The notes: generated from the letters alone by a model not told the origin. DNA of 60,048 bases from Macrostomum lignano (GCA_002269645.1 NIVC01003427.1:1-60048), one strand, 5' to 3'; counted from the first letter of the stretch, positions 54,101-59,520 are shown. Program-made: numbers and translations.

Positions 54101-57100
54101 TGCTGAGACGTTAACGCTTACAGTAGAATTTCTGTAATGTTGTGTGAGGCTCTTAGGAACAATCGATAAAATGTCAAGGTTCAAATGGCAAATTGCTGAG
54201 TTGTCAAGGTTCAGGGGGATTGCAAAAAAATTTATGGCTCATGGGGTTACCTCAGATGCTTTGAGTGTTAACAATACTGACTATACCAGCCACATCCTCT
54301 TTGTTGCCTCCCCGACGGAGGGTGTGACGCAGATTGCTAGTACATCTATCTAAACCTTTCGCAACTAATTCACCCAGGTGGAATCGGGACCTCGAAATGA
54401 GACCTTACTGGTGACCTGGACACCTCTAGCCGGTGCCGAGTCGAAGGGCACCCGGTTGGGTGGCTACGCGATCTACGCGGACGCCTCCCAGCTGGTGGCC
54501 ACCTGCATGCAGGTCGACGCCGACCATTGCGTTGTTGCCATGGCAACGCTACCTACGAATGCCCGAGTAGTCACCTGCCGAACTGTAGCTACCGATCAGG
54601 ATGGACGAGTAGTTGAAAGCGAAGATTCGAGTCCCGCTTGCGAGCTCGACGACGTGATTCTAGCTGCAAGTTCAAGCTTGAGCCAGCAGGAACAGGTGCC
54701 TCTACCTCACGACGTGAGTTCGCGTTCTTTAAAAATAAAATTCTGAAAAATTTACACCCACTCGTATGTTTTCTGTTATGTTGTAAGATGCTTGTGCAAC
54801 GTTTGTGTACTTTAAAGAATACGTACTTTTAAGGAGAATTTACAGCTTGTTAATGTAGACAAAGTCTGCAGATTAACAAAGCGCTTGGATTCCTGATGCA
54901 GTTCTATCTTTTAATTATTTCCTTAGCAAATTCTTACGTACAGAAAGGCTGCACTATTAAAAACTCAAAATAACACGTGCTTCGTCAAAAAGTATTTTAA
55001 CTGAATTTTTCTAGCGATTTATTAAAGTACTTCTAGGCGAAAAAAAGAACATTGTTCGAGACAACGGTTTTCAGCAATATTTTTTGTTTAAAAAAGCGAA
55101 GGCAACAGCTCTGGGTGATAGAACTGGGTCTTTAAATTTTAAAAATTTTGTGGCTTTGTACGTAGACTTAAACATGTGCATCTATAAGCGTAATTCAGTT
55201 TGCGTAATCTCAAATACTGTGTAACATCGTATATAACGTTTAAACTCTACATTTTAATATCTCATCTCGCTGTAAATTAGACCACTGAAACACCAAAGGG
55301 TATGAGACACACCATCGAAAACACCGAAGGGAATGAGGACACACCGTCGAAACACCAAAGGGAATGAGGACACACCGTCAAAACACTCGAAGGGAATGAG
55401 GACACACCGTCGAAACACCAAAGGGAATGAGGACACACCGTCAAAACAGAAGGGAATGAGGACACACCGTCGAAACACCGAAGGGAATGAGGACACACCA
55501 CTGAAATGGCAATACTACATTAGCCCGCAGGAAATTAGCCCGCGGGAAGTTTGCCAGCAGACGTTTCCCGCAGACGTTTGCCCGCGGGCAAGCTTCCCGC
55601 GGGCTAATTTCCTGCAGGCTAATGTCGTACTGCCGTTTCGGGTCTATGACATTAGCCATCGAAACACTGAAGGGTACAAGCGTATGAGGACACACCATAA
55701 TCGGGTTGAGATTATGACACCATTGAATTCAGGTAACATTTAAACAATTGTTACTAACACCAACTCCGTGACTCGCAATCCCAGGCAACCACAAACGAGT
55801 TTGGCATCTTCGTTAATTCAGCTGGTGTTCCAATTTTGTCGTCGCCAAATAGTGACGGAAAATTATTAGACGCCAACGGCAAAGCTTTGGCTTGTCGACG
55901 AGCGGTGGCATCGGTTGACCCCGGAACTGGCGAGCAGCGCCTTATTGACAAACTAGACGGCTTGCCCATTCGCGGTCTTCGACTTGGACCAAACGGAGTC
56001 CTACTAGACGAGTCCGGTTTGCCAGTTCGCGGTGAGAACGGCGAATTCTTCGGCGCTAATCATCGGCCGGTCTACGGTCGTCGAGGCGCCGACGGTGAAC
56101 TGTTGGACGAAGAGGGACAGGCTCTGCAGCAGCTGGGCTTGAACAGCTTTGGCGTGTTGGCCGATTCGACCACCGGACTGCCGATTACCCGCCAGTCGGA
56201 TGGTGCTCTACTCGACGCTCACGGCCAGCCAATCGATTGTCGACGTTGCGAGCTCAGCGCCAACGATTTGCTAGTCGATCCAGTCGACGGCTCGCCAATC
56301 GGCGTCACCAGTGTCAACGTTTTCGGCGTGCTGGTAGACTCGCAGGGCCGTCCGTTGCGCGGACCTCAGGGCGAGTTCTACGGAGCGAATCGGGCGCCGG
56401 TGTACGGCGGACTGCGCGGCCCTGACGGTCAGCTGATCGACCCGGCGAACGGCGGTCAGAGACGGACTCGAGTTAACGAGTTCGGTGCACTAGTGGACGC
56501 ATCCACTGGCGAGTTGCTACTGGGTCCAGACGATCAGCTGTTGAATTCTCGGGCACAGCCAATGTCAAGCCGGCGGGTTCGGCTGGTTGAAGCGACGGAA
56601 GAGGGCGGCCAACAGCAGCTGGTGGACGCAGAAACTGGGGAGCCGCTGAGTCCGGAAACGGACTGGCGTGTCAACGAGCACGGTGTCCTTGTGGACGCAG
56701 AGTCCGGCTTGGCTCTGCGTGGTCCTTCAGGCGAGTTTTTCGGTCCACAGGACGGTCTACCACTGGCCGGAGGTCCCACACGAGACGCCGAGGGTCGTCT
56801 GGTATGCGACGGCGTAGAAGATGGATCAGACTTAAGTGGCAAGCCGTTAAAAACGAAAGTCAACGACTGGGGCGTTCTAGTAGAGGTTGTCAGCGAAAGT
56901 GAAAACGCTGAGGAGCGACCAATTTTGTCGTCGGATGGTAAGCTTTTGGACGCGTCCGGCCGGGTCATCGACTGCCGAATCGTGCCAACAACAGCCGCAG
57001 CTCGGTCTCGTTTCGTCGACGACGTCGCTAAGAACAATGGACTGGAGCTGAGTGAGCACGGAGTGGTCATCGACACGGCCAGTGGTCTACCGGTTCGAAG

Positions 57101-59520: not shown

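Follow-up and report, generated by a model that had tools for sequence, protein, structure and literature searches.

The DNA analysed here, a 60,048-nt stretch from Macrostomum lignano (NIVC01003427.1:1-60048) that we refer to as the window, with positions counted from its first letter, carries on its plus strand a multi-exon gene for a RIM-binding protein (RIM-BP). The subject of this analysis is a long open frame that begins at 55785, between the last FN3 domain and the second SH3 domain of this gene, and that encodes five diverged copies of a repeat of about 110 residues. RIM-binding proteins, which include Drosophila Rbp and vertebrate RIMBP1/2/3, are active-zone scaffolds built from an SH3 domain, two or three FN3 domains and two further SH3 domains. 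The SH3-2/3 pair binds the calcium channel and RIM, the linker from FN3 to SH3-2/3 is commonly viewed as a passive, disordered tether, and the SH3/FN3 architecture is viewed as invariant.

The assignment of the host gene to RIM-BP, made in the original prediction, is borne out by two exons that match Pfam Ig_RIMBP2 (PF25523) above the gathering score, at 52287-52859 (E 1.4e-8) and at the first of the two exons given below, and by the joined FN3 and SH3-2 exons, which match the RIM-BP-type protein P0055 at E 1.8e-30, the sole match of a word-indexed protein search. P0055 is a metagenomic eukaryote protein with Ig_RIMBP2, SH3_9 and SH3_2 domains, and its SH3 region aligns with the start of SH3-2 at 59318-59449, a half-domain whose opening segment runs up to the residues DADGF. 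The Pfam scan alone gave no SH3-2 match in the window, which holds only the first half of this domain. SH3-2 lies downstream of the FN3 array and a linker, as in the canonical RIM-BP order, and the position of SH3-3 falls past the window end. A weak RIMB1_N match at 43293-43541 (E 4e-4) is below threshold. Further upstream, an ATG-initiated open reading frame (ORF) at 38648-39187 (+), which encodes a Ser/Arg-rich stretch and then a coiled-coil region and has no Pfam match there, is probably the first coding exon of the gene. The two RIM-BP exons that flank the repeat array are:

54369-54713, plus strand: upstream RIM-BP exon, third FN3/Ig_RIMBP2 domain (PF25523, E 5.2e-15), ending at the donor CAC GAC/GTGAGT, phase 0.
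58932-59450, plus strand: downstream RIM-BP exon, a poly-Q and basic linker and then the first half of SH3-2; acceptor tttcag/, phase 1 required, 3' end approximate.

Between these exons a frame of 801 codons (55758-58160) is free of stops. Given the base composition of the region, chance would leave such a frame open with a probability of about 2e-13, which rules out a chance ORF. The first 600 residues from the acceptor at 55785 consist of five units of 110-129 aa and a partial sixth (5.3 units), with boundaries taken from a MAFFT alignment and scores given against a profile of the unit:

55785-56132, plus strand: repeat unit 1 (116 aa), 138 bits.
56133-56465, plus strand: repeat unit 2 (111 aa), 145 bits; modelled by AlphaFold at a mean predicted local distance difference test (pLDDT) score of 78.
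56466-56852, plus strand: repeat unit 3 (129 aa), the most diverged, with insertions, 122 bits.
56853-57182, plus strand: repeat unit 4 (110 aa), 134 bits.
57183 to about 57500, plus strand: repeat unit 5, 131 bits.
57501-57584, plus strand: partial sixth unit of two hairpins, 21 bits over profile positions 7-50.

That five units and part of a sixth lie at this place had been noticed from the sequence alone, and MAFFT, BLASTP and the profile all recover them. The alignment of the five units has 16 invariant columns, and all ten unit pairs match by BLASTP at E 8.6e-11 to 2.2e-25 over about 100 residues, with a protein identity of 31-46%. Against the six-frame translation of the whole window, the profile returned exactly five full copies (122-145 bits) and one partial copy (the 21-bit match, spanning 57501-57629), and nothing significant outside the array. 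The unit starts first proposed, which had been set at the DGxLLD positions, describe the same repeat in another cyclic register than the boundaries used here.

Each unit comprises about six hairpins of about 15 aa that share the motif hhDxxGxPh (hydrophobic-hydrophobic-D/N-x-x-G-x-P-hydrophobic). These motifs are spaced 15-20 residues apart and number about 25-30 across the array, whose composition is 14% G, 8% D and 7% P. The order of the hairpins within the unit is fixed: NxFGVLVDxxTGxPI, SDGxLLDAxGQxIxCRR and a variable LxDxxDGxP element make up the first three, and NxHGVLxDxxSGLPVRG, GEFxGxNxRPVYG and DGxLxDxxG the last three.

When the units are compared as DNA, their nucleotide identity is 46-53%. 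Tandem Repeats Finder (TRF) detected no tandem repeat in 55785-57584 and blastn between units gave almost no signal, so that a DNA minisatellite is ruled out. The proportion of synonymous differences between units (pS) is 0.65-0.86, meaning that synonymous sites are saturated, the corresponding nonsynonymous proportion (pN) is about 0.4, and the ratio of nonsynonymous to synonymous rates (dN/dS) is at most 0.38 where it is computable. These values agree with the earlier suggestion that the DNA of the units has diverged, unlike the intronic minisatellites, with the protein kept under selection. The array stems from old internal duplications that have since been held by purifying selection, and is a real coding feature, old and selected, a result that is robust as sequence biology.

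The original prediction placed the end of the feature at 57582. This does not hold: no stop occurs in the frame until 58161-58163, and 58110, the most plausible donor, is the probable end of the exon. The remainder of the exon and its boundary signals are:

55752-55784, plus strand: branch-point consensus TACTAAC (55752-55758) and acceptor cccag/ ending at 55784, phase 0.
57585-57866, plus strand: acidic, Ala/Thr/Glu/Asp-rich low-complexity linker of about 95 residues, including a (GCT)n poly-Ala tract at 57588-57634.
57903-58100, plus strand: six tandem 11-residue amphipathic-helix repeats, xTxxK[M/F]xxFxE.
58108-58116, plus strand: candidate donor TAG/GTGATG, exon end 58110, phase 1, matching the acceptor at 58932.
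58161-58163, plus strand: TGA stop in the same frame, which would come into use only in a terminal, read-through exon.

The 11-mers have a hydrophobic moment of 0.39 at 98.2 degrees, the angle of a 3-11 helix (z = 5.0 versus shuffles). Because TRF finds in them a 33-nt DNA period that is still about 80% identical, they are younger than the hairpin units. Hairpin array, acidic linker and 11-mer helix together amount to about 775 residues inserted between FN3-3 and SH3-2.

We read 55785 to about 58110 as one internal RIM-BP exon between FN3-3 and SH3-2, made up of the hairpin array, the acidic linker and the 11-mers, whose product would act as a spacer or tether, and we give this reading a probability of roughly 0.6. 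The acceptor at 55784/55785 shares phase 0 with the GTGAGT donor at 54713 and is compatible with it. The exon has 9 nt ahead of the first hairpin, and possible start codons come later, the earliest being a TTG at 55836 and the first in-frame ATG lying about 260 codons in. Since no start codon lies ahead of the repeats, the exon must join an upstream exon and cannot begin a stand-alone gene. At the other end, 58932, as the first strong acceptor of the SH3-2 exon, calls for a donor in phase 1, which 58110 supplies, and direct splicing from 54713 to 58932 with the exon skipped would shift the frame. The module has a G+C content at third codon positions (GC3) of 0.595, its two RIM-BP neighbours have 0.61 and 0.58, and the introns have a GC content of 0.41. 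From the splice sites, their phases, GC3 and the missing early start codon, we infer that the module is spliced into the mature RIM-BP mRNA. The splice sites and phases fit both RIM-BP neighbours, in keeping with the earlier view that the exon is inserted in this gene.

Several observations weigh against an internal exon. At 5.8 bits, 58110 scores only moderately as a donor. In this Gly-rich frame GT falls in phase 1 more often than in any other phase (9 of the 13 candidate donors), so that the agreement in phase between 58110 and 58932 is weak evidence. CAG repeats 29-90 nt after 58932 also provide weaker phase-0 acceptors that would permit skipping of the exon.

The moderate strength of the donor is also what an alternative 3'-terminal exon would predict, in which the sequence is joined to FN3-3 and read through to the TGA at 58161, producing a truncated RIM-BP with the array and an amphipathic tail in place of SH3-2 and SH3-3. 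The frame does stay open for 17 codons past the candidate donor until this stop, but a run of 17 open codons would arise by chance in about 44% of cases. A terminal exon could use the AATAAA at 58885; however, this is the only canonical poly(A) signal, and it lies 720 nt downstream, just ahead of the next acceptor. As the phase of the 58110 donor moreover suits the next exon, we consider a terminal exon unlikely.

The unusual length of the exon, its own stop codon, its content unrelated to RIM-BP, and the fact that no annotated RIM-BP in the databases carries the module might instead indicate that the RIM-BP intron harbours a separate nested gene whose upstream exon or promoter is its own. Against this, the exon lies on the same strand as RIM-BP and has no start codon ahead of its repeats; its ORF opens just 27 nt upstream of the consensus acceptor and so needs an upstream exon. 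The exon is also phase-compatible with both RIM-BP neighbours and equal to them in GC3. We regard this arrangement as very improbable.

The product of this probable internal RIM-BP exon matches no described domain, as had been supposed at the outset. The Pfam scan of the exon product returned nothing above threshold, with matches listed up to E 10, the NCBIfam scan gave no valid family match, and PDB sequences gave no match by phmmer or by the unit profile. YD/RHS repeats, DUF3659, pentapeptide, RTX and other curated short repeats were absent from the Pfam matches up to E 10 and from NCBIfam, and the Rfam scan of the window returned nothing. A Pfam match to Dioxygenase_C (E 1.7e-4, below threshold) and NCBIfam matches to protocatechuate dioxygenase and FlgF were set aside as chance matches to a common GxVxDxxGxPI hairpin. 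A word-indexed protein search with the module, from which the poly-Ala tract was excluded, found no match.

Run exhaustively with hmmsearch over 1.84 billion representative proteins, the unit profile had 54 matches at E of at most 1e-3, the best at E 8e-23; none of them carries RIM-BP FN3 or SH3 sequence, and none is the protein itself or an orthologue. Type IVB secretion proteins of the DotG/IcmE/VirB10 family, with TrbI as their C-terminal domain, account for at least 21 of the 54, including one from Pseudoalteromonas prydzensis. Others are uncharacterised proteins of metazoans (Lingula anatina and Onthophagus taurus) and of protists, among them one with a C2 domain. The predominance of the DotG/IcmE/VirB10 family among the best matches could suggest horizontal acquisition from a bacterium, for instance of the DotG/IcmE central repeats of an intracellular symbiont. 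Yet no individual matched stretch exceeds 25 bits, the significance being a sum over 10-17 stretches, and the best bacterial match has a repeat period of 82 residues, against 110 in the unit of the window. When the order of the six hairpin segments in the profile was permuted, the database match P0001 scored 72-144 bits as against 97 with the native order, and the database matches scored the same or higher, whereas the window's own protein fell from 707 to 343-470 bits. It is because of these stretch scores, the 82-residue period and the permutation control that we take the database matches to share the hairpin and not the unit; the period comparison and the permutation control rule out homology to the DotG/IcmE repeats. 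As far as this search can detect, the 110-aa unit is without a relative among the 1.84 billion representatives.

Nor did the module protein match anything when it was scanned against 185,579 prokaryotic species genomes and against metagenome contigs. Because these scans were empty, and because the codon composition is host-like and the signals are spliceosomal, a recent horizontal origin is very unlikely, and we give acquisition from a bacterium almost no credence. The search that had been advised at the start, with a profile of the units and with bacteria and protists included, therefore disfavours a foreign origin. The idea of a lineage-specific module fares better, given that no relative was found at the level of the unit and that the linker of the only comparator RIM-BP recovered is Q/M-rich instead.

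The hhDxxGxPh arrays in P0001-P0054 draw only spurious Pfam matches of their own (FlgE D1, FliC, DUF3659, DUF6799 and PAS_3). More generally, the sequence comparisons suggest that arrays of this hairpin form an uncurated repeat class.

To model the fold, AlphaFold2 was given one unit, the remaining four serving as its alignment. The model has a mean pLDDT of 78 and a predicted template-modelling score (pTM) of 0.69, with many strands of two to three residues, and the beta-hairpin-rich character ascribed to the module beforehand is what is predicted. In a two-unit model (mean pLDDT 61.6), cores of about 65 residues reach a pLDDT of 70-85, and the junctions fall below 50. When the PDB was searched with Foldseek, one unit had no significant match (best E 0.39), and the two-unit model had matches at E 1.6e-4 to 9e-4, with template-modelling (TM) scores of 0.13-0.16 and a root-mean-square deviation of 15-21 A. 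The top matches of both runs were exclusively hairpin solenoids, namely the glucan-binding repeats of alternansucrase and dextransucrase, the combined repetitive oligopeptides (CROPs) of TcdA, TcdB and TcsL, and the choline-binding domains of LytA and CbpF. Structure prediction and Foldseek, both recommended beforehand, thus predicted a hairpin array and ranked only hairpin solenoids, at very low TM-scores. The models support a view of the module as an array of beta-hairpins that would resemble hairpin solenoids in architecture; they lend no support to placing it in those families. Two points count against a folded array: the alignments behind the AlphaFold models contain just 3-5 sequences, with the two-unit model of low confidence overall, and TM-scores of 0.13-0.16 indicate a resemblance of class only.

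The same low TM-scores, the inter-core segments with a pLDDT below 50 and the Gly/Asp/Pro-rich composition would also be expected of a disordered linker, in which case the hairpins would be an AlphaFold artefact and the repeats, if anything, multivalent 'stickers' for active-zone condensates; the linker of the comparator RIM-BP is plainly disordered and Q/M-rich. Against this, hydrophobic, Gly, Pro and aromatic positions are kept although synonymous sites are saturated, with the 16 invariant columns among the five units, and a single unit is modelled at a pLDDT of 78 and a pTM of 0.69. Permuting the hairpin order moreover costs the window's own protein 240-360 bits, so the order within the unit is conserved. 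A disordered linker is possible, and of the alternatives it is the one that we would dismiss least readily, but we doubt it.

If the internal exon does encode a folded array, the models point to an elongated, semi-rigid string in which cores of about 65 residues would be joined by less ordered hairpins. Such a string could lengthen and stiffen a linker that is otherwise disordered, the one from the N-terminal half of RIM-BP (SH3-1 and FN3) to SH3-2/3, and the spacing in the active-zone scaffold would then be larger or better defined. The acidic segment after the array would be flexible, and the adjacent amphipathic 11-mer helix could add a weak contact with the membrane or with vesicles. A bolder version holds that a folded rod of about 600 residues, representing a new repeat family, is combined with a synuclein- or apolipoprotein-like membrane helix, turning RIM-BP into a vesicle tether of fixed length, by which the distance from calcium channels to docked vesicles would be set; we think this quite unlikely, and if true it would amount to an experiment by nature in the engineering of coupling distance.

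It is not unusual for the linkers of scaffold proteins to carry lineage-specific repeat insertions. A selectively maintained and probably folded array of 600 residues with an amphipathic helix would nevertheless be a structural innovation of a rare kind for a core active-zone scaffold, and would offer a test of how scaffold geometry sets the coupling of calcium channels and vesicles. The hhDxxGxPh hairpin array recurs without a curated family, and a repeat model together with a solved structure would close this annotation gap.

Elsewhere in the window, a non-LTR (long terminal repeat) retrotransposon with endonuclease (Exo_endo_phos_2), RVT_1 and RNase H domains occupies 1259-5088 (+), and a second, fragmented copy lies at 31878-34043 (-). 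Upstream of RIM-BP, the minus strand carries at 5288-8180 the exons of an ankyrin-repeat gene, with membrane-binding repeats like those of ankyrin-2/3. Mini- and microsatellites are very abundant in introns and between genes, as (GACA/GATA)-type tracts and periods of 15-63 nt, and contain long spurious ORFs in all frames; the tracts lie at 9500-16700, 39900-43200, 43700-44800, 46880-47400, 49850-51450 and 55287-55623.

When the module is set beside known systems, the closest point of reference is RIM-BP itself. The host gene shares with known RIM-BPs the RIMBP2-type FN3/Ig domains and SH3-2 in canonical order, and the module sits in the linker from FN3-3 to SH3-2. In the single comparator RIM-BP locus (an ENA metagenome scaffold, 10001-12794), which is compact, this linker comprises about 280 residues of Q/M-rich low complexity. 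The RIM-BP architecture has been described as conserved, with SH3 and FN3 domains and no extra domain (PMC7565545).

The central repeat region of DotG/IcmE proteins outside Legionella pneumophila, such as Pseudoalteromonas prydzensis WP_443489276.1, uses the same DGxLxDxxGxPL hairpin in dozens of copies; it differs from the module in its period (82 versus 110 aa), in a hairpin order that is not common to the two, and in belonging to proteins with a TrbI/VirB10 domain and a periplasmic location. The exon product has no TrbI match in Pfam or NCBIfam and no blastp match to the C-terminus of P0001. In Legionella itself the DotG repeats are pentapeptide repeats (PMC6761968). Among eukaryotes, Lingula anatina LOC106176974 (with LIM and transglutaminase-like domains), Onthophagus taurus LOC111427558 and the protist C2-domain protein P0033 carry hhDxxGxPh arrays between recognised domains, but these arrays are independent, with different periods and no common unit, and their hosts are unrelated and uncharacterised.

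The 11-residue amphipathic repeats in the C-terminal part of the exon are of a kind also found in apolipoproteins, alpha-synuclein, perilipins and late embryogenesis abundant (LEA) proteins. Compared with apolipoprotein-type repeats, they have a narrow Phe/Met hydrophobic face, and their match to Pfam Apolipoprotein (PF01442), at E 0.022 and 14.9 bits against a cut-off of 90, falls short of the family level. Apolipoprotein- or synuclein-like repeats are in themselves notable in a presynaptic scaffold.

The hairpin array finds its nearest architectural counterparts in the choline- and cell-wall-binding repeats of LytA and CbpF, domain V of glucansucrases, which binds glucan, and the clostridial CROPs, which, as is predicted for the module, are elongated arrays of tandem 15-20-residue hairpins. 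Pfam CW_binding_1 and its relatives gave no match in the exon product, even up to E 10. These solenoids belong to extracellular ligand binders, whereas the module would be cytoplasmic, lacks their aromatic GW/YY signature and has a higher-order unit of 110 aa. Judged by these sequence comparisons, the M. lignano module is a new repeat unit made from a recurrent but uncurated hairpin motif and inserted in a well-known scaffold protein.

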